Below are positions 3,741 to 56,012 of a stretch of 64,000 nt of DNA, one piece after another. The stretch lies in the sequence record OQ790161.1; one strand, given 5' to 3'. Every line of letters begins with the position of its first letter. Positions within the stretch are counted from its first letter, which is position 1. Both the position numbers and the translations under genes were made by a program. Under the pieces are notes generated by a model, which was given only the letters and a program-made list of their open reading frames with translations, did not search any database and was not told where the DNA came from.

Positions 3741-5204
3741 ATGTCTGCTTTGGAACTACCGTTCAATGTAGAGATCTTTCAGCCCGCCGAAGAACAGCTG
3801 CGTTTGCTCAAGCCTGTCACCAGCACAGACTACTACGAGAACTCCAAGGGCGATCTCCACGAGGAGGGCCTGTTCTCCATCAGCATCTTCGGGCGCATCG
3901 GCGATGAAGCACGAGATCGTCGTTTCTCCTACATTGACATCAAAACTGAAGTCTTCCACCCCATCCTCTACAACCGTCTTATCCGGTTGAAGAAACTCTA
4001 CGGCGGCATCCTCAACGGGGAGTCGTACGCAGTGTGGGATGAGGTGCGCAAGGACTTCTTCCCCGCCAACGAGCTGACCGGTCAGACCGGGTTTGCGTTC
4101 TTCTGCGAACACTGGCGCAAGATCGAGTTCAGCCGGAACAAGTCGGACGTGCGCGACCTGCGTGCCAAGCTGATCGAGAAGTATCGCAACCAGAGCATGT
4201 CCAGCAAGATCCTGGTGATCCCCGCTGGCCTGCGCGACATCGAGGTCGATGAGAACGGACGGACCAACGTCCATGAGATCAACGCCCTGTACCTGAAGTT
4301 GCTGGCGCGCGCAGCGGTGCTGCCGGACCACGACAACATCAAGAACGATCCCTCGCACAACCTGGCTCGCAAGTTGCTGCAAGCGTGCTTCAACGACATC
4401 TACGAATTGCTGGAAGCCATGCTCTCGGGCAAGAAGGGTTTCTTCCAAGACAAGTGGTCGGCACGTAACATCACCAACTCCACCCGAAACGTGATCACCG
4501 CCATGGACACCTCCGTGGCTACGCTGGGCGCTGTCAATGCCCCACGCTTCACCGATACGGTTGTGGGTTTGTGGCAGCTGTCCAAAGCCGTGCTGCCGGT
4601 GACCATTCACCACCTGATGAAGAACTACCTCTCGCAGGTGTTCGCCTACGGCAACCGTACGGCACGTCTGGTGGATCCGACCACGTTGGATGCAGAAGTC
4701 GTGGAAGTGTCTTCGGATGCCTACGATCGCTGGAACACCGTGGAAGGGCTGGAGAAGGTCATCACCAGCTACAAGGAACTGTCACTGCGCAACAAGCCAG
4801 TGATGATCGACGGGCGCTACTTGGCCCTCATTTATGCCCCCAAGAACCGACCAGTGTTCAAGGTCTTCCACGACATCAATGATCTGCCCGAAGGGGCTGA
4901 CCGTGCTGACGTGCGCCCCATCAACCTGATGGAGCTTCTGTACCTGTCTGGGTACAAGATCTGGAACGACCAAGTCGGTACCGTCACCCGTTACCCCATC
5001 GCAGGTGTGGGTAGCTGCTATCCAACCACGGTCTATGCCAAGACCACGGTGGTGGGTGAAGTGCGCGGTGAGCTGGATGAGAACTGGCAAGTACCGACCG
5101 AAGGGACCAGTCATCTGGCGCCCGAGTTCCCCACTTACGAGCCGCTGGCTTATCAAGACAGCCTCGTGATTCCCAGTACCCGCCTTGCGGGACTGACAGC
5201 CGAT
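3741..5204 (+). CDS. Virion RNA polymerase beta'-like subunit (phiKZ gp180-like), exon 1
   Basis: Contains GLFSISIFGR, KKGFFQDKW..R, R.PIAG motifs of beta'. The ORF ends ...RLAGLTAD, where the catalytic NADFDGD-type motif is interrupted. Exon 1 is 488 codons and ends in GAT. Confidence 0.9.
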
Positions 5205-5609
5205 AACCCGTAGCACGAACTACGGGTAAGTCCCGTACTGCTGTGAAGCAGTACGTGCATTTCCCTTAATTGCTGGGAACTCCTGTTAAACTCAATGGCT
5301 ACAACGTGGGACGAAAGTCCGAGCGTGAATGCTGAAAACATTGAGGTAGGGACAATCAGCAGCTGAACCCTTCTGTGACCCGGCTTTTTAGCACGAGGAG
5401 CGTGGGGAGAGTTCAACGACTATCCGGTGGTGCGGAGTACATTGCAATTGGGCAATGGAAATAGGGAAACATCTTCGAATCTGCGTCTGGGCAAAACGCT
5501 GCGAAGATGAAGATATAGTCTGGCCTGCATGGAGACATGCAGCAGTGGATCTGTAGTTGCGGCAGACACCACGCGCTTGAGGGAATACGACCACAAGCGG
5601 AACAAAGCG
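5205..5609 (+). ncRNA. Group I self-splicing intron (IA2-like), ORF-less, 405 nt
   Basis: The 5' exon ends in U, which can pair with G5230 in P1, and the intron ends in G5609. Core elements: P AATTGCTGGGAA (5268), Q AATCAGCAG (5354), R GTTCAACGACTA (5411), S AAGATATAGTCT (5510). Pairings: P3 TTTCCCT/AGGGAAA, P7 GACTA/TAGTC, P8 ATCTTCG/CGAAGAT; P2 and P9 carry GNRA loops. Removal restores TAD-FDGD in frame. Confidence 0.92.
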
Positions 5610-5786
5610 TTCGACGGCGATACCGCCAGCTTCATCGCATACTACACCGATGCCAAGTTCGACATCGTGGATTATCTCAACACCAAGCAAGCCTTCGTGG
5701 ATCCAGTGGGTGGCATCCGGACCAGTGCAGCGGTTGATACCGTTGTGTTGTTCCTGCGCAGCTTCACGGGCAACCCCGAGGATTGA
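5610..5786 (+). CDS. Virion RNA polymerase beta'-like subunit, exon 2 (FDGDTASF...; 58 aa)
   Basis: Starts TTC GAC GGC GAT right after the intron-terminal G. The spliced product is 546 aa with an intact ADFDGD metal-binding motif. Confidence 0.88.
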   Translation, partial: FDGDTASFIAYYTDAKFDIVDYLNTKQAFVDPVGGIRTSAAVDTVVLFLRSFTGNPED

Positions 5787-5802
5787 TCTCAAGGACCTGG
5801 AC

Positions 5803-7104
5803 ATGCAAGACAAAATCGAACAGGAACTCGAGTCGACCTTGGCGTCGCTCGAGGCACTGGAGGACTATACCGAGGAACTGGTCAATGACCAGGTGAGCTT
5901 GGAGTCCTTCGGTGAGAAGGTGGACTACTTGCAAGTGCGCAGGTTGCAAGAACTCGAGCTCAGCTTGGGAATGGAAGCGTTGGACATGAACGATGTCCGC
6001 GACGTCTTTGCTGCTGCCGGTCGTGCTTCCATTGCCACCGGCCGTGGCTTCATGAAGATGGTAGACACCGTTCACCGCTGGGTGGATCAAACCCATCTGG
6101 TGCGGTTGCAGCAAACCCGTGCCAAGATCAAGGCGCTGCCGGAAGCTGATGCCAAGATCAACAAGGGTCGGATGGAGCGTAACAAGCTCGCTGTGGCCCT
6201 GTCGGTGGGTGGTGAGTTCCCGACCAACTTCGATGCCTACGCTGAAGGGTTGGTGGACTTCTCCCGTCGCACCGGTAACACGGTCCTGCCAGATCTGGCC
6301 TCGCTCAGTCGCGCCATCGGTGCACGTCTGGAAGCCAAGCGTTGGATGGGCAACGATGCCTTCAACGCCGAAGTGCTGGAGATTACCAAGATCATCGGCC
6401 AGTACAAGCTGCCCATGCAGCGTTACCCCGACACCGACTACCGTCGTCTGTTCCCCGGCAACCGCTCGATCTTCTCCACGATCAAGCCGCGTCGTCCCCG
6501 TCGTGAACCCAAGGAACAAAGCGGTGCTGTGCGCAAGGTCATCGATGGTCTGACCAGTACCACCGTGGGCGTCATTAAGCGTTCGGACTACACCCGTGGT
6601 AAAGCCGATTCGATTCTGCCCATCCTCAACGGTGAGCAGATGTTGGACATGCTCAACGCTGCTGAACAACTGCTGCGCGAAGCGGTGCGCATTGGCCAGC
6701 TGGCCAAGGGCTATTCCAAGGATCGACTGCCCTCCACCTTCTCGATGATGATCTCCGGCTTCTATCATGGCGTCAAGCGCCAGTTCGATGATGTCTGGAC
6801 CGCGCAAGACGATGGCTTTGATGTCATCGAAACCCGCGGTGGTCAATCCCAGCGGCACAAGCCCGGCAAGCGCAACCCCTTGGGTGGCGCCACCGGCGGC
6901 CTGGTGCGTGGGGGTATCGGGATGGAGAAGGATCAACGGGATGAAGACGAACAGCGCTCGCAAATGGCGGTGTGGGTCACCCGTTACCTGAAGCTGTCCT
7001 TGCTGGATCACCAGCGTACGGCGCAGTCGCTGATCCTGCTGTTGCTCGGCGTTGCCAAGACGTACATGGAGTACGTCGATGAAAGTCTCGACTACTACAC
7101 CTGA
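5803..7104 (+). CDS. Putative virion head/ejection protein with acidic cleavable N-terminal propeptide
   Basis: ATG 5803, 433 aa. The acidic N-terminus has clustered SLE/ALE/SLE/GME motifs that fit the gp175-type protease consensus. It lies between the vRNAP subunit genes. Confidence 0.6.
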   Translation: MQDKIEQELESTLASLEALEDYTEELVNDQVSLESFGEKVDYLQVRRLQELELSLGMEALDMNDVRDVFAAAGRASIATGRGFMKMVDTVHRWVDQTHLVRLQQTRAKIKALPEADAKINKGRMERNKLAVALSVGGEFPTNFDAYAEGLVDFSRRTGNTVLPDLASLSRAIGARLEAKRWMGNDAFNAEVLEITKIIGQYKLPMQRYPDTDYRRLFPGNRSIFSTIKPRRPRREPKEQSGAVRKVIDGLTSTTVGVIKRSDYTRGKADSILPILNGEQMLDMLNAAEQLLREAVRIGQLAKGYSKDRLPSTFSMMISGFYHGVKRQFDDVWTAQDDGFDVIETRGGQSQRHKPGKRNPLGGATGGLVRGGIGMEKDQRDEDEQRSQMAVWVTRYLKLSLLDHQRTAQSLILLLLGVAKTYMEYVDESLDYYT

Positions 7105-7338: not shown

Positions 7339-10300
7339 ATGCCCTTTACACGCCTTACTTCCGCAAGTACGGCGTGCTGCGTGCAGTGCAGTTGGCTGCA
7401 CCGCTGCTCAACAAGCTTGCTGTGTTGGAGCTGCCCAAGGAAACCGTCCTGCATTACATGCCCGAGGACGAAACCGAAATCGGCCTGCCGCAAGACCATG
7501 CGATCTTGATCAACAACACCCGTGTGATCATGACCGAACACGTCACCCAGTTGGGTGATGACAAGGGCAACCCGCGGACCCTGCCGATCCCCTCGGCCCA
7601 GATGAAGCGCGAGTACCATCGGCAGAACCGTCGTACCCGTGAGATGCTGCGACCGGAAACGGTCATGCGCGATGTCAACACCATCGTGGTGGAGAACTAC
7701 GCGCTGCTCAGCCATCTGTATCGCTACCCCACCAACTACTTCCGCGCTTACTTCAAGTGGTGGAACATCCAAGCTGCCCTGTGGCAGCGTGTGGGTGAGA
7801 TCTCCCAGAACTACCCGCTGCGCAACCAATTCCTTCAGTGCCGCCTGCCCACCTTGCTGCCGACCATCGGTCAGCTGCGTCGTGGCGAAGGTGAGATGAC
7901 CCGCAACCTGCTCGGTAGCTTCGTGCAGCCGGAGTCGCTGCTGATCCTGGAGATCTGGAAGTGGCTGGGTGAGCGTCGTGAGAACTCGGTGCTGTCCAAG
8001 TGCCCGCCTGAAGCCCTGACCAAGATGAACCTGATCTTCATTGAACAGGATCGCTGGTTGATGCTGAATCTAGGTCTGCTGGACAAGTGGCGCAAGCGCA
8101 CGCTGGAAGAAGGTGGCAACGATACCCACAAGGGCATCTTGGATCCGATCATGATCCAAAAGCGTTTCCTGCGTCTGTTGATGACGTTGATGGAAGTGCG
8201 CACGGGCGGTGAGATCAACGAAGCACCGGCTGGTGAGATCGACACGGCGGTTGTCAATGTGGATGCACAAACGGCGCCGGGCTCGAAAGAGGATCCGGAC
8301 ACCAGTATGACGGTGGCTCGCTCCGAGCCGGTCAAGCTGTCGGTGCCCACCGAAGATGGTCGCACGGCCAAGATCAAACTGACGGCCAACTTGAATCTGG
8401 ATCGTCTACCCGATGAACTGATCGAGGAAACCCCGGAGAACCAGCTCGCCATCGATGAGGCCATCACCAAGGACCTCGAAGCACTCGATGCAATCATGGC
8501 CCGGTTCCAGGAAAGCCAAGTCGAAGGTGAGGAAGACTCTCCGATCGATACCTCCACCGGCGAAGTCAGCACCATGCTCAAGTACGTGCCCAACGAGCGT
8601 TCGCTCTCGGGTAGCGTGATGGCCAAGATGGACCAGCTGGCTGATGCCGGTCTGTGTTCGGGTGCCGAGTACCGTCGCATGACGGCGCTGTCTACCGCCT
8701 ACCAGCGACTGCCCAGTCCCTTCGGCGAAGGCACCTTGGAAGACATGTCCACGATCGCACACGAAGATCTGGTCCTGTCCACCGAGTCGCAGATTCCGGA
8801 CATGCTCACCGTGCCGGACAAGACGATGCTCAAGAGCTCGATCTTGGAATACGACAAGCAGTACCTGAACAAGATCTACCGCAAGGATCTGGTTCGTTCG
8901 GTGCTGGGCGTCCAGCATGCAGGTATCGCCGTGACCGGCTTCCAGATGGATGAGTACAAAGACGTGCTCAACCACTACGAGAAGTTTGCCATCCAGCTCA
9001 CCCCTGTGGTGGGTAAGGTCTCCACGGTTTACGCCAAGCTGCCCAAGATCAATGCCGACGGTACCTACGTCGACAACGGTTCGCGTTACCGCATGCGCAA
9101 GCAGCGTGGTGACGTGCCGATCCGTAAGCTCTCGCCTTCGCGTGTGGCGCTGACCTCGTACTACAACAAGGTCTTCATCTCGCGTTCGGAAAAGCAGATC
9201 AGCAACTATCCGGGTTGGCTCACCAACCAGATCGCTGCGATGGCCATGGACGAGGACAACGGCACGATCGACCACGCCATGTTGGCCGATGTGTCTGACA
9301 CCGAAATCCGCACCCCGCGTATCTACTCGATCTTGGCTTCGCGCTTCCGCTCGTTCCATCTGTACGAAGGCGACAACGCCTACGTCTACGAGTTCTTCTT
9401 GGACTACCATGCGCGCAAAGCGCAGTTCGGTGCCGAGCGCGTGGAGGCGATCGAGAAGGACGGTCTGTTGGTCATCGGTAAGGCACAGGCCTCCGGTAAC
9501 CTGCTGGTGGTGGACAACACCAACACGATCTACGAAGCACAGGGTCTGGAACTGAAGACCTTGGGCTCGATCGAAACGATGATCGGTACGCTCTCCGGCA
9601 AGCCGCCGGCAGAGACGGCAGAGATTCGCATCTTCGGCAAGCAAGTGCCGGTGGGCCTGTTCTTGGCTTACCACTTGGGTATCACCAAGTTGTTCGAACT
9701 GCTGGGCGTGACGCCGCGTAAGGTACCCACCGGTACCCGTGCGTACATGAACGGGGACGAGCTGGCCATTCGCTTCGAAGATGAGATGTGGATCTTCCCG
9801 CAAGACCAAGGCATGCGTACGCTGATCCTGGCCGGTCTGGCCAGCTACGACAAGATCACCCGCAACTACTCCTCGCATCTGTTTGATCGCAAGGACATCT
9901 ATCTGCCGGTGCTGGAGCAATCCCGCGTTGGCGTGCGCTACTTGCGCGAGATGGATCTGCTGGTGGAACTGTTCGTGGATCCGATCACTGAGGACATCCT
10001 CAAGGAAATGGGTGAGCCTACGGACTTCATCAGTCTGGTACTGCGGGCCTGTCAGTTGCTGGAGACCGATTGGTCGCCGGCTGAGACCGACATGGCTTAC
10101 ATGCGCATCAAGGGTTACGAACGCTTTGCCGGTGCGCTCTATGCGGAACTGGTCAAGGCCATTCGTCAGCAGCGCGCTCGTGGTTCGATTGCCAATGCCA
10201 AGATCGACATGCATCCCGATGCGGTATGGATCGGTGTGTCTCTGGATCCGGTCAAGAAGGCAGTGGAAGAATCCAACCCCGTGCACAACGCACGTGAGCG

Positions 10301-11693
10301 TGAGGAAGTCACCTACTCCGGTGTGGGTGGTCGTTCGGAACGTTCGATGGTCGGTCGTACCCGTGTGTATCATCCCAATGACTTGGGCGTGATCTCCGAG
10401 TCCACCAAGGATTCGGCGCAGGTGGCCATCACCACGTTCATGCCGGCAGATCCCACGCTGTTGAATGTGCGCGGTATGGCACGTCGCTTCGATCCGGAAA
10501 AGGACGGGATCACTTCGGTGATGTCGACCCCGGCTCTGTTGTCGCCGGCTGCCGATCGTGACGATCCCAAGCGCGTGAACTTCATCCCGATTCAGCACTC
10601 CTCCGGTACGTTCGCCAAGGGCTACCGTCAGACTCCGTTGCGTACGGGCTATGAGCGTGTGCTGGCACATCGCAATGACGACATGTTTGCTGCATCGGCT
10701 GACCAAGACGGTGTGGTGACCTCGTTGGACGCAACTCGTGGCATGGTCGTGACCTACGCTGACGGTTCCACCCAATCCATCAAGGTGGGGCGTCGCTTCG
10801 GTAAGGCCGCCGGTCTGGTGTTCCCCCATCAGCTGACGGCGATGTACCAAAAGGGTCAGTCCTTCAAGAAGGGCGACATCTTGGTGTACAACGAACGCTA
10901 CTACGAACCGGACAGGCTCACCCCCGGACAGGTGGTGTGGAAGGCCGGCCTGTTGGTCAACACGGCCATCATGGAAAACCCCGATACCCTGGAAGACTCC
11001 TCGGTGATTTCAGCCCGTGTGGCTGCGGATCTGGAAACCGAAATTACCTACGTCCGCGACATCGTCGTGGCCTTTGATCAGTCCATTCATGGGCTGGTGG
11101 AAGAGGGTAGCGAGGTGGAGATCGAGAGTATCCTATGTACGATCGAGGACGCTGTGACGGCCGAGAACAGTTTGTTTGACGAGAACTCGTTGGACATGCT
11201 GCGACTGCTGGCCGCCAACACGCCGCGTGCCAAGTACAAGGGCGTCGTGGAAAAGGTGGAGGTGTTCTACCACGGCGAGATCGACGACATGTCGACTTCG
11301 TTGATGGAGATTGCAGCTGAAAGTGACCGTGACCGCAAGCGTCAAGCACGGTCGCTGCAAGAGCAGGCCATGAATGGTAAGGTGGATTCGTCCACTCGTA
11401 TCCAGTCCAAGCCCCTGCCGGCTGACCATCTGCTGATCCGCGTGTATATCACCGGCGCCGCTTCGGCGGGTGTGGGTGATAAGGCTGTCTTCGCCAGCCA
11501 GTTGAAGACGGTGGTCGGTCGCGTCTTGAATGGCGTGAACGAAACCAAGTCGGGTCTGCCGGTGGATGCAATCTTCAGCTACGCATCGATCTCCAATCGC
11601 GTCGTTCGTAGCCCTGAAATCATGGGCATCACCAACGTCCTCCTCAAACTCATCAGTAAACGCATGGTAAGTGCGTACAAGAAGGGAAAGTAA
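7339..11693 (+). CDS. Virion RNA polymerase beta-like subunit (phiKZ gp178-like); apparent 1-nt frameshift near 7342-7347
   Basis: 1439-aa ORF from 7374 with beta motifs (GRSERSM, ISESTKDS..V, D.PKRVNF..IQ, EDS.VIS, GVGDK..F..Q.K.V). The open frame extends upstream as LYTPYFRKYGV but the nearest ATG (7339) is out of frame by one base at CCC-TTT. Corrected length would be about 1451 aa. Confidence 0.88.
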
Positions 11694-31384: not shown

Positions 31385-32173
31385 ATGCAGTCAACCAAAT
31401 TGGAATGGCGCGAGATCCCTGGAGTAGACAAAGCGTTTGTGGTAAGCAATGAAGGACGCGTCTACAACCGGGTGCGCCATCGGTTGATTCGCACTTACTT
31501 CAATCACAAAGAGTACGTCATGGTCAGTGTCAGGTCTGAGGATGGACGTCCTCTCACCTGCGCACTCCACCGACTGGTTGCCTTGGCGTTCTTGGAACGA
31601 CCTGAGCGCCATCGTGACAAGGACTACTCCGAACTTCAGGTCAGTCACCGAAACGGCAACAAGGTCGTTAACAGTGTCGACAACCTTGAGTGGGTCACGC
31701 CCACTGAGAACATGGCACTGGCTAGAGCATCGGGGTTCTTTGATAACGAACTGCCCGTACTGGCCAAACCCAACCGGGGGAAAATCAAACACTACCCCAG
31801 CGTTGCCGAATGTGCCCGTCAACACAACCTGCAACCCGTAGACCTGTGGCGACATCTCACCTCTCCCTACGCAGGGATGATCGAGGCTGACGATTGCCGC
31901 TACAAACTTGACAATCAATCCCCATGGCCCAGTCAATGGACCGTACCTGATCCGTCCATTCGAATCGGTATGGCCTGTGACTGCGTGGGTGAGAACGTTG
32001 AGACCGGTCTCAAACTGATCTTCGTCTCGTTGGCACAAGCTGCCAACTATCTGTCCCTCCCACTGACGCCGCTTCGTCTATCTCGTTCGAGAAAAGGCTT
32101 TGACGTGCCCTTTAAGGGATGGATCTTCTACTCGCTGAGCGGACGACCGCTCAGCCGCAAACTCAAAGGGTGA
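31385..32173 (+). mobile_element. Free-standing NUMOD4-HNH homing endonuclease
   Basis: W..IPG...VSN.GRV (NUMOD4), HRLVALAF, VSHRNGNK..N...NLEWVT..EN (HNH); visibly lower GC and weaker codon bias than its neighbours. Confidence 0.85.
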
Positions 32174-52356: not shown

Positions 52357-54297
52357 ATGTCCATGTCCCGTCCCGGCGACAACAACGGCAATGACAAGAA
52401 CCAGCAGGGCACCCCGAAGAGCGGCGTGTTCAGCGATTCGTTCAACCAGACCGGCAACTCGCAGAACGCCGGCGCTGCCCAGGGCAGCTCCAACACCAAC
52501 CGCACCGGTGGCTCGCCGCGTGGCGTGAACCGCATCCTGTCCCAGCGCACCGGCATGGGCCGCAAGCGTCCGGCCGCCGACATCAAGGCGATGCAGGAAG
52601 CCCTGAGCCTGGAACTGGACGCGTTCAACAACAACGCCGCCCTGCCCGAAGCGCAGGACTTCAAGCTGATCATGGCGGACCGCAACCGCCTGAACAAGAA
52701 GGTCGACGCGCTGATCTGCGTGCTGCCGGTCAACCACGAAGGCTCCATCCACGCCGTCATCCACACCCTGCTGCTGGAAGACGCCAACGACGCCTACGAG
52801 CCGACCACCCTGCAGGTCGCCGGCAAGCAGTACCGCTACACCACCGCGGTGGGCGACGTCTACACCCCGGAGTTCTGGGCAACCATCGTGGACGTGGTCA
52901 CCGAGCAGAGCGGCCTGAAGGTCATCCCGTACGACGCCGGTCACCAGACCATCCCGGCTGAAGCGGACATCAAGGACAAGGACGCGATCCACAAGTTCGC
53001 CTTCTTCGCCAGCGAAGCGCTGACCCGCAACGCGCTGAGCCAGATCCTGAAGACCACCGCCGACGTGATCTCCCTGACCGACCTGGGCGACAGCGTCAAC
53101 ACCACCGCCGTGATCGACTTCCGTACCGTCGACGACCAGACCGCCTCCGGCCTGCCGCTCGCCAGCGATTACGAAGTGAAGCTGCGTTACAGCGACGTGG
53201 CCGGCGGCCAGGGCACCAACCAGAGCGGCAAGGCGTTCGAGCTCGGCAGCCAGATCCCGCTGGGTGGCGCGACCGGCATCATCGACCTGTCCTACTCGCC
53301 GCCGCCGCAGGCCGGCTTCGGTCAGCAGCAGCAGACCCAGCACTACTGGGCCCGTACCGTGCTGACCCGCCTGGACACCGACCAGGACGTGATCACGCCG
53401 GAACTGCAGGGCCTGTCCCTGCTGGCTGCCACCCTGATCGGCCGCAACCTGAACTGGGCGCGCACCTGGTCGCCGCAGTTCCGCAGCCAGGACGATGTGC
53501 TCAACGACATCGGCGCCATCGGCTACGAACTGCCGGGTCCGGACGGCCAGCCGTACGGTCGCATCCCGACCAACACGGCGTCCTTCGACGACGCGGCGCT
53601 GGCGAAGCTGGTCATGACGGCCATCCACGACCGTCCGATCATCTCGCTGGACATCGAAGAGTCGGGTGAGCTGACCTGGCTGAACCGCGTGCTGCTGGAC
53701 GCAGCCAACGGTTCGCAGGAAGCCGAGCAGGCCATCATCGACACGTTCGACAACCTGACCGGCGGCAACTTCAGCAAGCTGTGGACCGGCGGCCGTCTGG
53801 TCGAAGACGACAACAACCGCATCCACCTGGGTTACTTCATCGCCGATGACCTGGGCACCCGTCGTGACATCCGCAACCTGCGCTACCTGCAGGTGCTGAA
53901 CCGTTACGCCGAGCAGGATCCGCAGATGATCGTCAAGTGGCAGGACACCTTCGACAACCAGGACCTGGACCCGGAAGTCCGCCTGGCCGAGCGTGAAGAC
54001 CTGATCCGCAAGATCCTGGGCCCGACCGTCCGCATCACCGGCTACGCCCGTCGCGTGTCGTTCAACCCGGACTTCCTGAACTGCGCGCTGGAAGCGGCAG
54101 CGATGGCCGGTCTGCGCATCCGTCCGGAAAACACCCTGATCGGCTTCGGCCAGACCGTCTCGCGCGGTCGCGCCGACATGTCCTCGCTGGCCTTCGGTGG
54201 CCAGGGTGGTCGTGGTGTGTTCGTGCACGGCGGCAACAACAACGCCGGCCGCTCGTTCGCACGTCCGTTCACCGGCCGTGGTCCGTTCCTGCGCTAA
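52357..54297 (+). CDS. chmA: Chimallin, phage nuclear shell protein
   Basis: 646 aa with a low-complexity N-terminus. WAR..P, DIGA.G, SFDD, NL.GGNF, LG......RD.R.L and LG.TV..TG.A.R..FN.DF recall 201phi2-1 gp105. Extreme codon bias; directly before the nvRNAP beta' gene. Confidence 0.9.
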   Translation: MSMSRPGDNNGNDKNQQGTPKSGVFSDSFNQTGNSQNAGAAQGSSNTNRTGGSPRGVNRILSQRTGMGRKRPAADIKAMQEALSLELDAFNNNAALPEAQDFKLIMADRNRLNKKVDALICVLPVNHEGSIHAVIHTLLLEDANDAYEPTTLQVAGKQYRYTTAVGDVYTPEFWATIVDVVTEQSGLKVIPYDAGHQTIPAEADIKDKDAIHKFAFFASEALTRNALSQILKTTADVISLTDLGDSVNTTAVIDFRTVDDQTASGLPLASDYEVKLRYSDVAGGQGTNQSGKAFELGSQIPLGGATGIIDLSYSPPPQAGFGQQQQTQHYWARTVLTRLDTDQDVITPELQGLSLLAATLIGRNLNWARTWSPQFRSQDDVLNDIGAIGYELPGPDGQPYGRIPTNTASFDDAALAKLVMTAIHDRPIISLDIEESGELTWLNRVLLDAANGSQEAEQAIIDTFDNLTGGNFSKLWTGGRLVEDDNNRIHLGYFIADDLGTRRDIRNLRYLQVLNRYAEQDPQMIVKWQDTFDNQDLDPEVRLAEREDLIRKILGPTVRITGYARRVSFNPDFLNCALEAAAMAGLRIRPENTLIGFGQTVSRGRADMSSLAFGGQGGRGVFVHGGNNNAGRSFARPFTGRGPFLR

Positions 54298-54371: not shown

Positions 54372-54584
54372 GCCGTCTACGTGTAAAAAGCAACACAGAA
54401 CAGCTATGAAATGATCCGGTGTTTTGCTGAGCTGCCACCGGAGAGAACGAATCGAAGGCTCAGTGCAGAAAGGGGATGAACTATCAACGCACTACTTTCA
54501 TTTGACCCCGAGTCGATTGATCCCCCGTTGCGTGCTCGCAAGCGCGACGGGATTGACAAGTGTCGCAAGTTCGATGGCATTGCG

Positions 54585-56012
54585 ATGCGACTGGTGGACC
54601 TGAACCGGGATTTCGAAACGGCCAGCAATCCGCCGGTGATCGTCAACTCCTTCAACGTGAACACCGTCGAAGACAAGCAGCTGCTGGATCGGATGATCTA
54701 CACCTACTACGAAGGCGATAGCCTGAATGTGGTGCCGACCTGCGACTGTGGCAAAACCAAGGGCGCTGGCAAGATCGGCAGCCGTTGTCCCAAGTGCAAC
54801 GGTGAAGTCCGTCCGGTCAGTGAGCAACCGCTGGAGCCGCTGCTGTGGCTGGCTCCGCCTGACGGTGTCAAGACCTTCATCAACCCCCAAGCGTGGACCA
54901 TGTTGTCCAAGGCTCTCTCGCATGGTGGGGTGAACGGTCTGGCCTGGCTGTGTGATCCTTACATGCCAGTGGGTAACGAACCCCATCGTGAGATCCGTCG
55001 TCTGATGGATCTGGGTATCGAACGTGGGATCAACAACTTCTACGACAATTTCGATGAGATCATCGAGATGCTGTTCAATGCCGGGGTGATCTCGGGCACC
55101 AGCCGTCGTCAACGCGAAGATCTCTACCAGTTCATCAAGCTCAACCGCGATCGCATCTTCACCCGCCACCTGCCGATCCCCTCGCGCATGGGGTTTGTGA
55201 CCGAGCGGTCGATTACCGGTTCGTTTGCTGATACCACGATGAAGACAGCGATCGAGGCCATTCGCACGATCTCGGCCACCGTCCATTCGCTGATCCCGCT
55301 GGACATCAAGCGACTGCAGTCGCGTACGGTAAAGGCCAACGAGTATCTGGCCGTTTACCATCAGGAGTACATGTCCGCAACGCTGACGTCCAAGCGTGGC
55401 TGGCTGCGTAAGAACGTCTTCGGTTCTCCGCTGTACTTCACCTTCCGTGCCGTGATCTCCTCGCTGTCGGAGCGCCACGAGTACGATGAGTTGCACCTGC
55501 CGTGGGGTGTGGCGGTCTCGACCTACGAGGTCCACCTCACTTCCAAGATGTTCCGCCTGAACAATCCGGATACCGGCCGGCCGTTTACTCCCAACGAAAT
55601 CAAGAAGCACTTGCGCGAGCACACGCTGCGTTACAGTCCGCTGATTGATCAGTTGTTCAAGGAGCTGATCGCCGAATCCCCGCACAAGGGACTGCCGGTC
55701 CTGTTCAACCGCAATCCGTCACTGGACCGCGGTTCGATCCAGGAATTCTTCGTCACCAAGATCAATCCGGATCCGAAGATCAACGCCGTGGCCATGTCGG
55801 TCCTGACGCTGAAGGCGCCCAACGCCGACTTCGATGGCGATGCACTGAACGGCACCCCGCTGTTGTCCAACCGCTTGGAGCGTGCATTCAACGTGCTTGC
55901 TCCGCACCAAGGCGTCTTGGATCTGGACCGCCCACGTTCCATGTCCAGAAACCAAGCGATGCCGCCACCGGTGGCAAGTACCATCGCCAACTGGCTGCAC
56001 GGTGGCAAGTAG
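54585..56012 (+). CDS. Non-virion RNA polymerase beta'-like subunit (phiKZ gp55-like), uninterrupted; exact start uncertain
   Basis: Zn-binding CDCG..CPKC, FTFRAVISS, FNRNPSL and catalytic NADFDGD. Confidence 0.92.
   Translation: MRLVDLNRDFETASNPPVIVNSFNVNTVEDKQLLDRMIYTYYEGDSLNVVPTCDCGKTKGAGKIGSRCPKCNGEVRPVSEQPLEPLLWLAPPDGVKTFINPQAWTMLSKALSHGGVNGLAWLCDPYMPVGNEPHREIRRLMDLGIERGINNFYDNFDEIIEMLFNAGVISGTSRRQREDLYQFIKLNRDRIFTRHLPIPSRMGFVTERSITGSFADTTMKTAIEAIRTISATVHSLIPLDIKRLQSRTVKANEYLAVYHQEYMSATLTSKRGWLRKNVFGSPLYFTFRAVISSLSERHEYDELHLPWGVAVSTYEVHLTSKMFRLNNPDTGRPFTPNEIKKHLREHTLRYSPLIDQLFKELIAESPHKGLPVLFNRNPSLDRGSIQEFFVTKINPDPKINAVAMSVLTLKAPNADFDGDALNGTPLLSNRLERAFNVLAPHQGVLDLDRPRSMSRNQAMPPPVASTIANWLHGGK

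Follow-up and report, generated by a model that had tools for sequence, protein, structure and literature searches.

In phage phiKZ, gp180 ends with ...APLGAD and a stop codon, followed by gp179 (HNH_3 and NUMOD1 domains), a match to the Rfam group I intron model RF00028 (92 bits) and a resumed reading frame FDGDTVSF..., that is, FDGDTVSFNAVYSEE.... In the literature, introns are listed in gp55 and gp180 with reference to Mesyanzhinov 2002 and Ceyssens 2014 (PMC10914365, PMC11512511), and gp179 is treated as an intron-encoded homing endonuclease, predicted in 2002 (PMC10914365, PMC11512511, PMC12676376). Under the conditions of one full-length transcriptome study of phiKZ, no spliced reads were reported from the introns predicted at gp56, gp72 and gp179 (PMC10914365). 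In Goslar, a phage of E. coli, the order is gp205, gp206 (HNH), an annotated Intron_gpI ncRNA and exon 2. Another group I intron in a chimallivirus virion RNA polymerase (RNAP) gene is that of PhiPA3 gp210 (Birkholz et al. 2024, PMC11620839). It likewise lies at conserved aspartates of the catalytic region and encodes an HNH nickase that belongs broadly to the same family, but it interrupts the beta subunit gene (a gp178 homolog) at another site. Its endonuclease is active and acts as a weapon against phiKZ (PMC11620839).

We analysed the last 64 kb (the window) of the genome of Xanthomonas phage RTH11 (OQ790161.1, 312,199 bp). Position 3741 of the window is record position 251,940, with 100% identity. 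No published paper on RTH11 was found in the literature. RTH11 is a jumbo phage that resembles the chimalliviruses. A homolog of chimallin, which forms the nuclear shell in phiKZ, is encoded at 52855-54273 (26% identity, E 3e-25), one of gp55, the beta'-N subunit of the non-virion RNAP, at 54576-55835, and those of the virion RNAP subunits at 3741-5204 (gp180) and 7350-10349 (gp178). Both RTH11 and its relative LucasX are cultured, viable phages. Positions 5205-5609 very probably constitute a functional group I intron without an endonuclease in the RTH11 virion RNAP beta'-N gene. The intron is no new kind of element. Its site, AD|FDGD, is already known from phiKZ and annotated in Goslar, and the RTH11 intron is an endonuclease-free member of that lineage.

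The reading frame at 3741..5213 ends ...RLAGLTADNP*, with its last aspartate codon GAT at 5202-5204 and the stop codon TAG at 5211-5213. The codons TTC GAC GGC GAT, for FDGD, start at 5610, right after G5609 and 405 nt past T5204. An earlier note on this DNA had placed an ORF-less group I intron at 5205-5609, between the first Asp and the Phe of A-D-F-D-G-D. Both the coordinates and the insertion point are confirmed here, as ...LTAD and FDGD flank the gap at 5204/5610. The features of the interrupted gene are as follows.

3741..5204, + strand: predicted exon 1 of virion RNAP beta'-N, 488 codons, ending ...LAGLTAD; matches phrog_2986 positions 5-484, E 8e-180
5205..5609, + strand: group I intron, ORF-less, 405 nt; RF00028 68.9 bits
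5211..5213, + strand: TAG stop codon in the unspliced RNA, giving a truncated product of 490 aa, ...TADNP
5610..5786, + strand: predicted exon 2, FDGDTASF...GNPED and stop, 58 codons; matches phrog_2986 positions 485-538

The covariance-model check that the earlier note had proposed gave a match to the full RF00028 model (5219-5542, + strand, model positions 1-253, 68.9 bits, E 2.2e-15), above the gathering score of 50. It is the sole match at threshold in the 64-kb stretch and exactly one match was obtained in the whole RTH11 genome, while a permissive Rfam scan yielded further matches at chance level only, none of them credible. The ORF list shows no ORF of note inside the 405 nt. The GenBank record of RTH11 contains neither an intron nor a joined CDS; two proteins are annotated instead, WJJ55172 (‘RNA polymerase beta subunit’, 490 aa) and WJJ55173 (‘hypothetical protein’, 69 aa, 5577-5786). 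A broken automated annotation of this kind had been foreseen, and the 85-aa ORF expected with it exists in the ORF list at 5529..5786. In the records of RTH11 and LucasX, and likewise in the RefSeq record of phiKZ, an essential subunit is listed as truncated, together with a stray small ORF or nothing; for RTH11, the annotation would be fixed by a joined 546-aa CDS.

Three lines of evidence fix the intron boundaries: the profile join, the gap-free alignment of the flanks, and the rule of an exon U and an intron G described below. Because the join 484|485 in phrog_2986 is consecutive, no residue is lost or gained at the junction. When the flanks were joined by script, one 546-codon ORF resulted, which is identical to an uninterrupted homolog of 546 aa (P0016) at 392/546 residues without any gap at the junction. 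Intron removal restores the host reading frame in this alignment, and removal of the intron, and only that, yields full-length beta'-N with an intact catalytic loop. The predicted tryptic junction peptide of the joined product is LAGLTADFDGDTASFIAYYTDAK.

Several comparisons support that the host gene is the phiKZ gp180 orthologue and would encode the beta'-N subunit of the virion RNAP, as had been proposed earlier. The protein encoded by exon 1 shows 40% identity to gp180 in a full-length alignment (gp180 residues 1-490), and its homologs carry the annotation ‘vRNAP beta' subunit 1’ or ‘virion-associated’. The gene neighbourhood matches phiKZ gp181 / gp180 / gp179 / gp178, with the gp178 homolog downstream, and a divergently oriented neighbour of 2553 aa occupies the position that gp181 has in phiKZ. 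In related contigs, the gene at the gp181 position has SLT or Glyco_hydro_19 domains. By orthology to gp180, which is annotated ‘structural head protein’, the RTH11 subunit would also be packaged in the virion.

Neither exon product matched a Pfam family, nor did the gp178 homolog, and where Pfam gave nothing, PHROGs and a profile search against the PDB were used. Single-sequence PDB searches returned no match, and no solved vRNAP beta'-N structure was found in the PDB searches. A profile of 37 uninterrupted homologs, on the other hand, matches beta' chains of solved RNAP structures, both of AR9 (7S00/7S01) and of bacteria, and its gaDfDGD is aligned opposite DYDGD of AR9 beta'. Within this profile, D488, D490, G491 and D492 are invariant. 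The catalytic Mg is bound by the DxDGD aspartates of the beta' DPBB domain (PMC7598289), and the intron therefore parts the first aspartate from the other two. Exon 2 of RTH11 differs from that of LucasX at 8, 7 and 31 first, second and third codon positions, respectively. Because differences in exon 2 fall mainly on third codon positions in the RTH11 clade, it is translated in this frame. Exon 2 in the FDGD frame is evidently under purifying selection.

The RNA fold was examined with nine ORF-less inserts, those of RTH11, LucasX and seven further relatives with host proteins 76-82% identical to that of RTH11, which were aligned with MAFFT on sequence alone. In LucasX (MW825358) the insert likewise measures 405 nt and occupies the equivalent position, with 87% identity over the aligned region. 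RNAalifold on the nine-sequence alignment recovered P1, P2, P3, P4, P5, P5a/b, P6, P7.1, P7.2, P9, P9.1 and P9.2, with 46 compensatory pairs in its consensus. It mis-pairs the P7/P8 region owing to the pseudoknot and to alignment gaps, and P7 was added by hand. The hand-written structure accordingly consists of this fold, the exon part of P1 and the P3/P7 pseudoknot. Its elements, all on the + strand, are listed by position.

5202-5213 / 5220-5232, + strand: P1, 11 pairs, 100% paired, 5 compensatory
G5202-A5203-U5204 with G5230-U5231-C5232, + strand: exon part of P1, with the U5204.G5230 wobble at the 5' splice site
5206-5213 / 5220-5227, + strand: intron extension of P1, an 8-bp hairpin with a 6-nt loop (5214-5219)
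5235..5254, + strand: P2 hairpin, 8 bp, GUGA (GNRA) loop 5243-5246; 8/8 pairs compensatory
5260-5266 (UUUCCCU) / 5463-5469 (AGGGAAA), + strand: P3, 96% paired
5270-5276 / 5356-5362, + strand: P4, invariant
5281-5284 / 5349-5352, + strand: P5, covarying
5291-5297 / 5339-5345, + strand: P5a, covarying
5309-5320, + strand: GGAC-GAAA-GUCC hairpin in the distal three-way extension of P5a; this distal hairpin covaries
5363..5412, + strand: P6/P6a region, with 5368-5370 / 5405-5407 and an inner hairpin at 5383-5392
5418-5422 (GACUA) / 5516-5520 (UAGUC), + strand: P7, the guanosine-binding helix; both strands invariant in 9/9
5423-5426 / 5433-5436, + strand: P7.1, 100% paired, 2/4 pairs compensatory
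5440-5445 / 5452-5457, + strand: P7.2, 100% paired, 5/6 pairs compensatory
5470-5477 / 5502-5509 (5470..5509), + strand: P8, inner stem with an invariant 11-nt loop, UCUGGGCAAAA
directly before 5516-5520 (P7 3' strand), + strand: J8/7, GAAGAUA
5525..5542, + strand: P9 hairpin, 7 bp, GAGA (GNRA) loop 5532-5535; 3 pairs compensatory
5545-5548 / 5569-5572 and 5550-5554 / 5562-5566, + strand: P9.1, 100% paired, 2 compensatory; past the Rfam model
5574-5578 / 5595-5599, + strand: P9.2, 100% paired, 3 compensatory; past the Rfam model
5609, + strand: omega G at the 3' splice site, in the conserved tail GAACA..(C/G)G

In this structure, 98.5% of 850 cells are paired and 42/96 pairs are compensatory, and none of 500 shuffles reached values as high. 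When the structure was slid by 1-3 columns, pairing fell to 34-42% with at most 11 compensatory pairs. Only the invariant inner pairs of P8 entered the count, because MAFFT gaps shift the register of the outer ones; read off the alignment, CAUCUUCG/CGAAGAUG in RTH11 versus CUUCUCG/CGAGAAG in LucasX is a compensatory change in P8. P4 and P7 never vary, and their backing therefore comes from conservation and the Rfam model, not from covariation. The position of U5204.G5230 is U.G in 9/9 sequences. All the helices named in the earlier note (P1 with U5204-G5230, P2 and P9 with GNRA loops, P3, P4, P7 and P8) are present, and the two extra helices it placed at 5423-5457 between P7 and P3' each show compensatory changes and are 100% paired. 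In structure, the element is an intact group I ribozyme, and its fold is under selection.

P10 would comprise at most 2 bp, A5229-U5610 and A5228-U5611. A longer P10 between CGAA in the P1 loop and UUCG in the 3' exon is present in RTH11 but was dropped, as it is not conserved in relatives. Separately, a loop-loop contact of L8 (GCAA) with L9.1 (UUGC) is possible in the clade, where both loops are invariant; it is lost in one of the other loci (L092).

The intron could conceivably be a splicing-dead relic, with the gene a pseudogene or rescued otherwise. Such an end would suit an intron in which the homing endonuclease was lost or never present, which is the stage of the homing cycle before decay. 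However, the core helices are all intact, compensatory changes are spread over the whole fold, and J8/7-P7 and P4 are invariant. Exon 2 is moreover under purifying selection, the genome has no second copy of the gene (the only other beta'-N is the non-virion paralog at 54576-55835), and the phages are viable. A dead intron is thus very improbable, and a functional one remains the reading that we follow.

P7.1 and P7.2 are reportedly typical of subgroup IA, as Michel and Westhof are said to have described in 1990. The classical phage group I introns of subgroup IA2 are those of T-even td, nrdD (sunY) and nrdB. Like the RTH11 intron, these T-even introns lie at conserved sites in essential phage genes, and they are self-splicing. 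In blastn comparisons, the RTH11 intron is 85-91% identical to T6 td and nrdD over J8/7-P7 (intron positions about 300-346), whereas no similarity is detectable beyond this core, and the T-even host genes are different. By P7.1 and P7.2, the architecture of the RTH11 intron is evidently of the IA type. The narrower label IA2 would draw just on these two hairpins plus the local td/nrdD similarity, and ‘IA2’ itself has been reported to be heterogeneous (PMC11878797).

The site was then compared among relatives. A metagenome scan with exon 1 gave one short contig, without exon 2, and the relatives were obtained through exact-protein look-ups. Of the 120 protein clusters that match exon 1 best, 70 continue through (A/G)D(F/Y)DGD, and the other 50 stop within a few codons past ...L-x-(A/G)-D. 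At the DNA level, 9/80 IMG/VR loci are interrupted at the site, Goslar among the nine, by inserts of 384 to 2294 nt. Every interrupted locus scanned (LucasX, eight IMG/VR loci, phiKZ and Goslar) has an RF00028 match inside the gap. The earlier note had suggested aligning the site across gp180 homologs; the comparison finds it already occupied in phiKZ, in Goslar and in those 50 of the 120 best clusters.

Beta' homologs naturally split at this point had been named in that note as evidence against an intron, and a gene of this kind would have its 490-aa and 69-85-aa pieces translated separately and assembled without splicing. Elsewhere, jumbo-phage RNAP subunits do consist of several separate polypeptides (PMC7598289), exon 2 is preceded in frame by an ATG (5529) and a TTG (5577), and spliced phiKZ reads were not reported (PMC10914365). 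Yet 70 of the 120 best homolog clusters are uninterrupted through ADFDGD, each interruption scanned with Rfam contains a ribozyme, and the gap evolves as paired RNA, neither as a spacer nor as coding sequence. Such a break would also part the three aspartates of a single Mg-binding loop, whereas the common split site of beta'-like subunits is after the DPBB domain, outside the motif (PMC7598289). Separate translation is therefore improbable in the extreme, and this reading and that of a dead intron are both poorly supported.

The preferred reading, an intron that is spliced out, is also consistent with splice sites across the lineage. In 22/22 interrupted loci, a U precedes the intron, a G is the last intron base, and (A/G)DFDGD is restored. 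The splice point directly follows GAU in 19/22. In two others (L009 and L094), where Asp is encoded by GAC, it is shifted downstream by 1 nt and follows the initial U of the Phe codon, and in a further one (L058) the shift is of two bases. The +1 introns of L009 and L094 have GGUC as their guide sequence, the phase-0 introns GUC. The Asp wobble base, guide sequence and splice point vary together, which independently supports P1 as modelled from the sequence. A similar 3' tail, GAACA..(C/G)G, recurs throughout the lineage.

Self-splicing would follow the standard two-step, guanosine-initiated pathway. The guide G5230-U5231-C5232 would pair with the Asp codon GAU, the last exon bases, forming the U5204.G5230 wobble. 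Exogenous guanosine bound in P7 would attack after U5204. G5609 would then take over the P7 pocket, and the freed 3'-OH of exon 1 would attack after G5609. Ligation would produce GCC GAU|UUC GAC and with it the 546-codon ORF with an intact A-D-F-D-G-D magnesium-binding loop. As the unspliced RNA encodes a 490-aa fragment with one of the three catalytic aspartates, splicing would be obligatory for an active virion RNAP, as the earlier note had soundly inferred.

Splicing may also be other than autonomous and constitutive, depending on a phage or host factor, or serving to time or throttle the virion polymerase in a ribosome-free phage nucleus. Since RTH11 has a chimallin homolog, its transcription is probably separated from translation. 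In addition, the splicing of T4 introns is reported to vary with translation and with the state of growth (Sandegren and Sjoberg 2007, cited by PMC10914365), spliced phiKZ reads went unseen under one set of conditions (PMC10914365), and the ORF-less intron is kept in 15/15 of the nearest protein clusters. This retention, however, is equally explained by the difficulty of exact deletion from a catalytic motif (an argument made in PMC12908238), and the sequence has no feature indicating a regulator. Regulated splicing is unlikely on this evidence, and constitutive self-splicing is the reading retained.

By the following comparisons, the RTH11 intron evidently shares both lineage and site with the phiKZ gp179 and Goslar gp206 introns. 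The phiKZ gp180/gp179 intron is in the same host gene at the identical AD|FDGD position, GAU|...G|UUC GAC, and has an RF00028 core and the guide-sequence context AAGUCC followed by the P2 hairpin. Its 3' tail is CUGAACAUAACG, versus GGAACAAAGCG in RTH11. On the other hand, the phiKZ intron is 1443 nt long with a 357-aa HNH_3 and NUMOD1 ORF, versus 405 nt in RTH11. The phiKZ ORF, with its start 55 nt past the 5' splice site and its end in the loop of P2, thus sits in the P1 loop, where RTH11 has an 8-bp hairpin closed by a 6-nt loop. Downstream of exon 2, RTH11 has a 433-aa gene that is unrelated to gp179; this ORF (5803-7104) was considered as a displaced gp179-type endonuclease and rejected, having no similarity and no domain. 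The phiKZ gp55/gp56 intron is also related, with the tail CUGAACAAUACG, and interrupts this catalytic motif in the beta' paralog, but it and its ribozyme lie 6 nt upstream (N|ADFDGD), and the RTH11 paralog reads NADFDGD with no interruption. According to the ORF list, the RTH11 gp178 homolog (7374-11693) is uninterrupted as well.

Goslar and an IMG/VR relative (L066) have the same site, with guide-sequence/P2 and 3' ends matching between the two, and the Goslar endonuclease is of the same family; but Goslar infects E. coli, its protein is 41% identical, and extra insertions are found in P5 and P8. The 2044-nt Goslar intron has an ORF-less 510-nt twin in L066, and so the presence or absence of the endonuclease is polymorphic between close relatives. 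More generally, the long introns at this site carry mutually homologous HNH_3/NUMOD/I-HmuI-like ORFs of 329-597 aa. One of them (L022) has an HNH ORF of 597 aa, and the same intron in another locus (L019) has a 208-aa remnant without an HNH match.

Truncation at the site is seen in each of the 15 clusters closest to RTH11 (76-97% identity), and nine sequenced inserts measure 398-418 nt; the ORF-less form therefore appears fixed in the clade. Among the closest outgroups are both an allele without interruption (P0016) and one with an HNH gene (L004). Within the RTH11/LucasX clade, the intron appears to have been inherited vertically. The RTH11 intron contains no homing-endonuclease ORF, by which a mobile intron would be recognised, and it would have lost its endonuclease gene rather than never having had one.

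One intron lineage is thus found time and again in the DNA coding for the DFDGD loop of the virion polymerase in chimallivirus-like phages; its members have intact, truncated or absent HNH genes and a splice point that tracks the Asp wobble base. What is added here is the prevalence of this site among environmental relatives, the series of endonuclease decay, and the shift of the splice point with the Asp codon. The lineage offers a series in which the cyclic gain and loss of homing endonucleases can be compared, and perhaps also intron-based attack and immunity between co-infecting jumbo phages. In the latter respect, the intron may have been kept as a shield, its occupancy of AD|FDGD removing the target of the gp179-family HNH nickases that rival chimalliviruses encode at this site. 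We regard this idea as unlikely; if true, RTH11-type phages would be immune to an attack like that of PhiPA3 against phiKZ. The sole gp179-family gene in RTH11 is an unannotated, free-standing ORF of 262 aa with NUMOD4 and HNH_3 domains (31385-32173), and, more speculatively, it might mobilise the ORF-less intron in trans by ‘collaborative homing’.

In phiKZ, the gene for the β′-N subunit of the non-virion RNAP, gp55, is interrupted as well as that of its virion counterpart, gp180.

phiKZ (NC_004629) 3924-6560, interrupted gp55 locus, with gp56 (HNH) and a core matching the Rfam group I intron model RF00028 at 75.6 bits

Because exon 2 of gp55 begins ADFDGDQ, the insertion lies between N and ADFDGD, and the equivalent of the gp180 site is 6 nt farther downstream. 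Thus, the same catalytic motif holds related introns in both phiKZ β′ paralogs, whereas the non-virion paralog of RTH11 (window 54576-56010) is uninterrupted.

At the site between AD and FDGD, introns of three related loci are off the common phase.

L009, 4956-5354, intron
L094, 4456-4820, intron
L058, 4943-6731, intron

The predicted splice points of L009 and L094 are 1 nt downstream, with GAC as the Asp codon and GGUC as the guide sequence, and that of L058 is 2 nt downstream. Such phase differences could have arisen from independent insertions or from boundary sliding. One IMG/VR contig has another group I match, which is probably within the adjacent gp178-like gene.

L019, 7888-8309, second RF00028 match (55 bits), about 1.8 kb downstream of exon 2

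Within the RTH11 intron, the L8 and L9.1 loops (window 5507-5509 and 5566-5572) contain the complementary tetranucleotides GCAA and UUGC, respectively, and both loops are invariant across the clade of RTH11 and its close relatives. As judged from this complementarity, L8 could contact L9.1 by pairing of GCAA with UUGC. The more distantly related L092 does not show this pattern.

At the location of phiKZ gp179, the HNH endonuclease gene, RTH11 has an unrelated gene, which separates exon 2 from the gp178 homolog.

5803-7104, + strand, 433-aa ORF

Pfam and PHROG searches gave no match for this ORF. Close relatives (L086-L091) have a gene of 432-442 aa at the same position, and in L092 and L094 exon 2 and the gp178 homolog have no called gene between them.

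The RTH11 genome has a single gp179-family gene. It lies elsewhere, free-standing, with a virion structural gene on one side and a 770-aa ORF on the other, and no group I signal was found near it.

31385-32173, + strand, 262-aa ORF with NUMOD4 and HNH_3 domains, unannotated in GenBank

It is 26% identical to gp179 (E 4e-16), and its further homologs are phiKZ gp56 and Goslar gp206. The GenBank call at these coordinates is a minus-strand hypothetical protein. Incidentally, Rfam places 14 clustered tRNA genes at 67,282-76,918 of the RTH11 record, none of which is a feature among the GenBank rows listed.

The nuclear-shell protein of phiKZ also has a homolog encoded in the window.

52855-54273, + strand, chimallin homolog (26% identity, E 3e-25)

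This similarity suggests that RTH11 forms a phage nucleus, in which case intron folding and splicing would occur apart from ribosomes.
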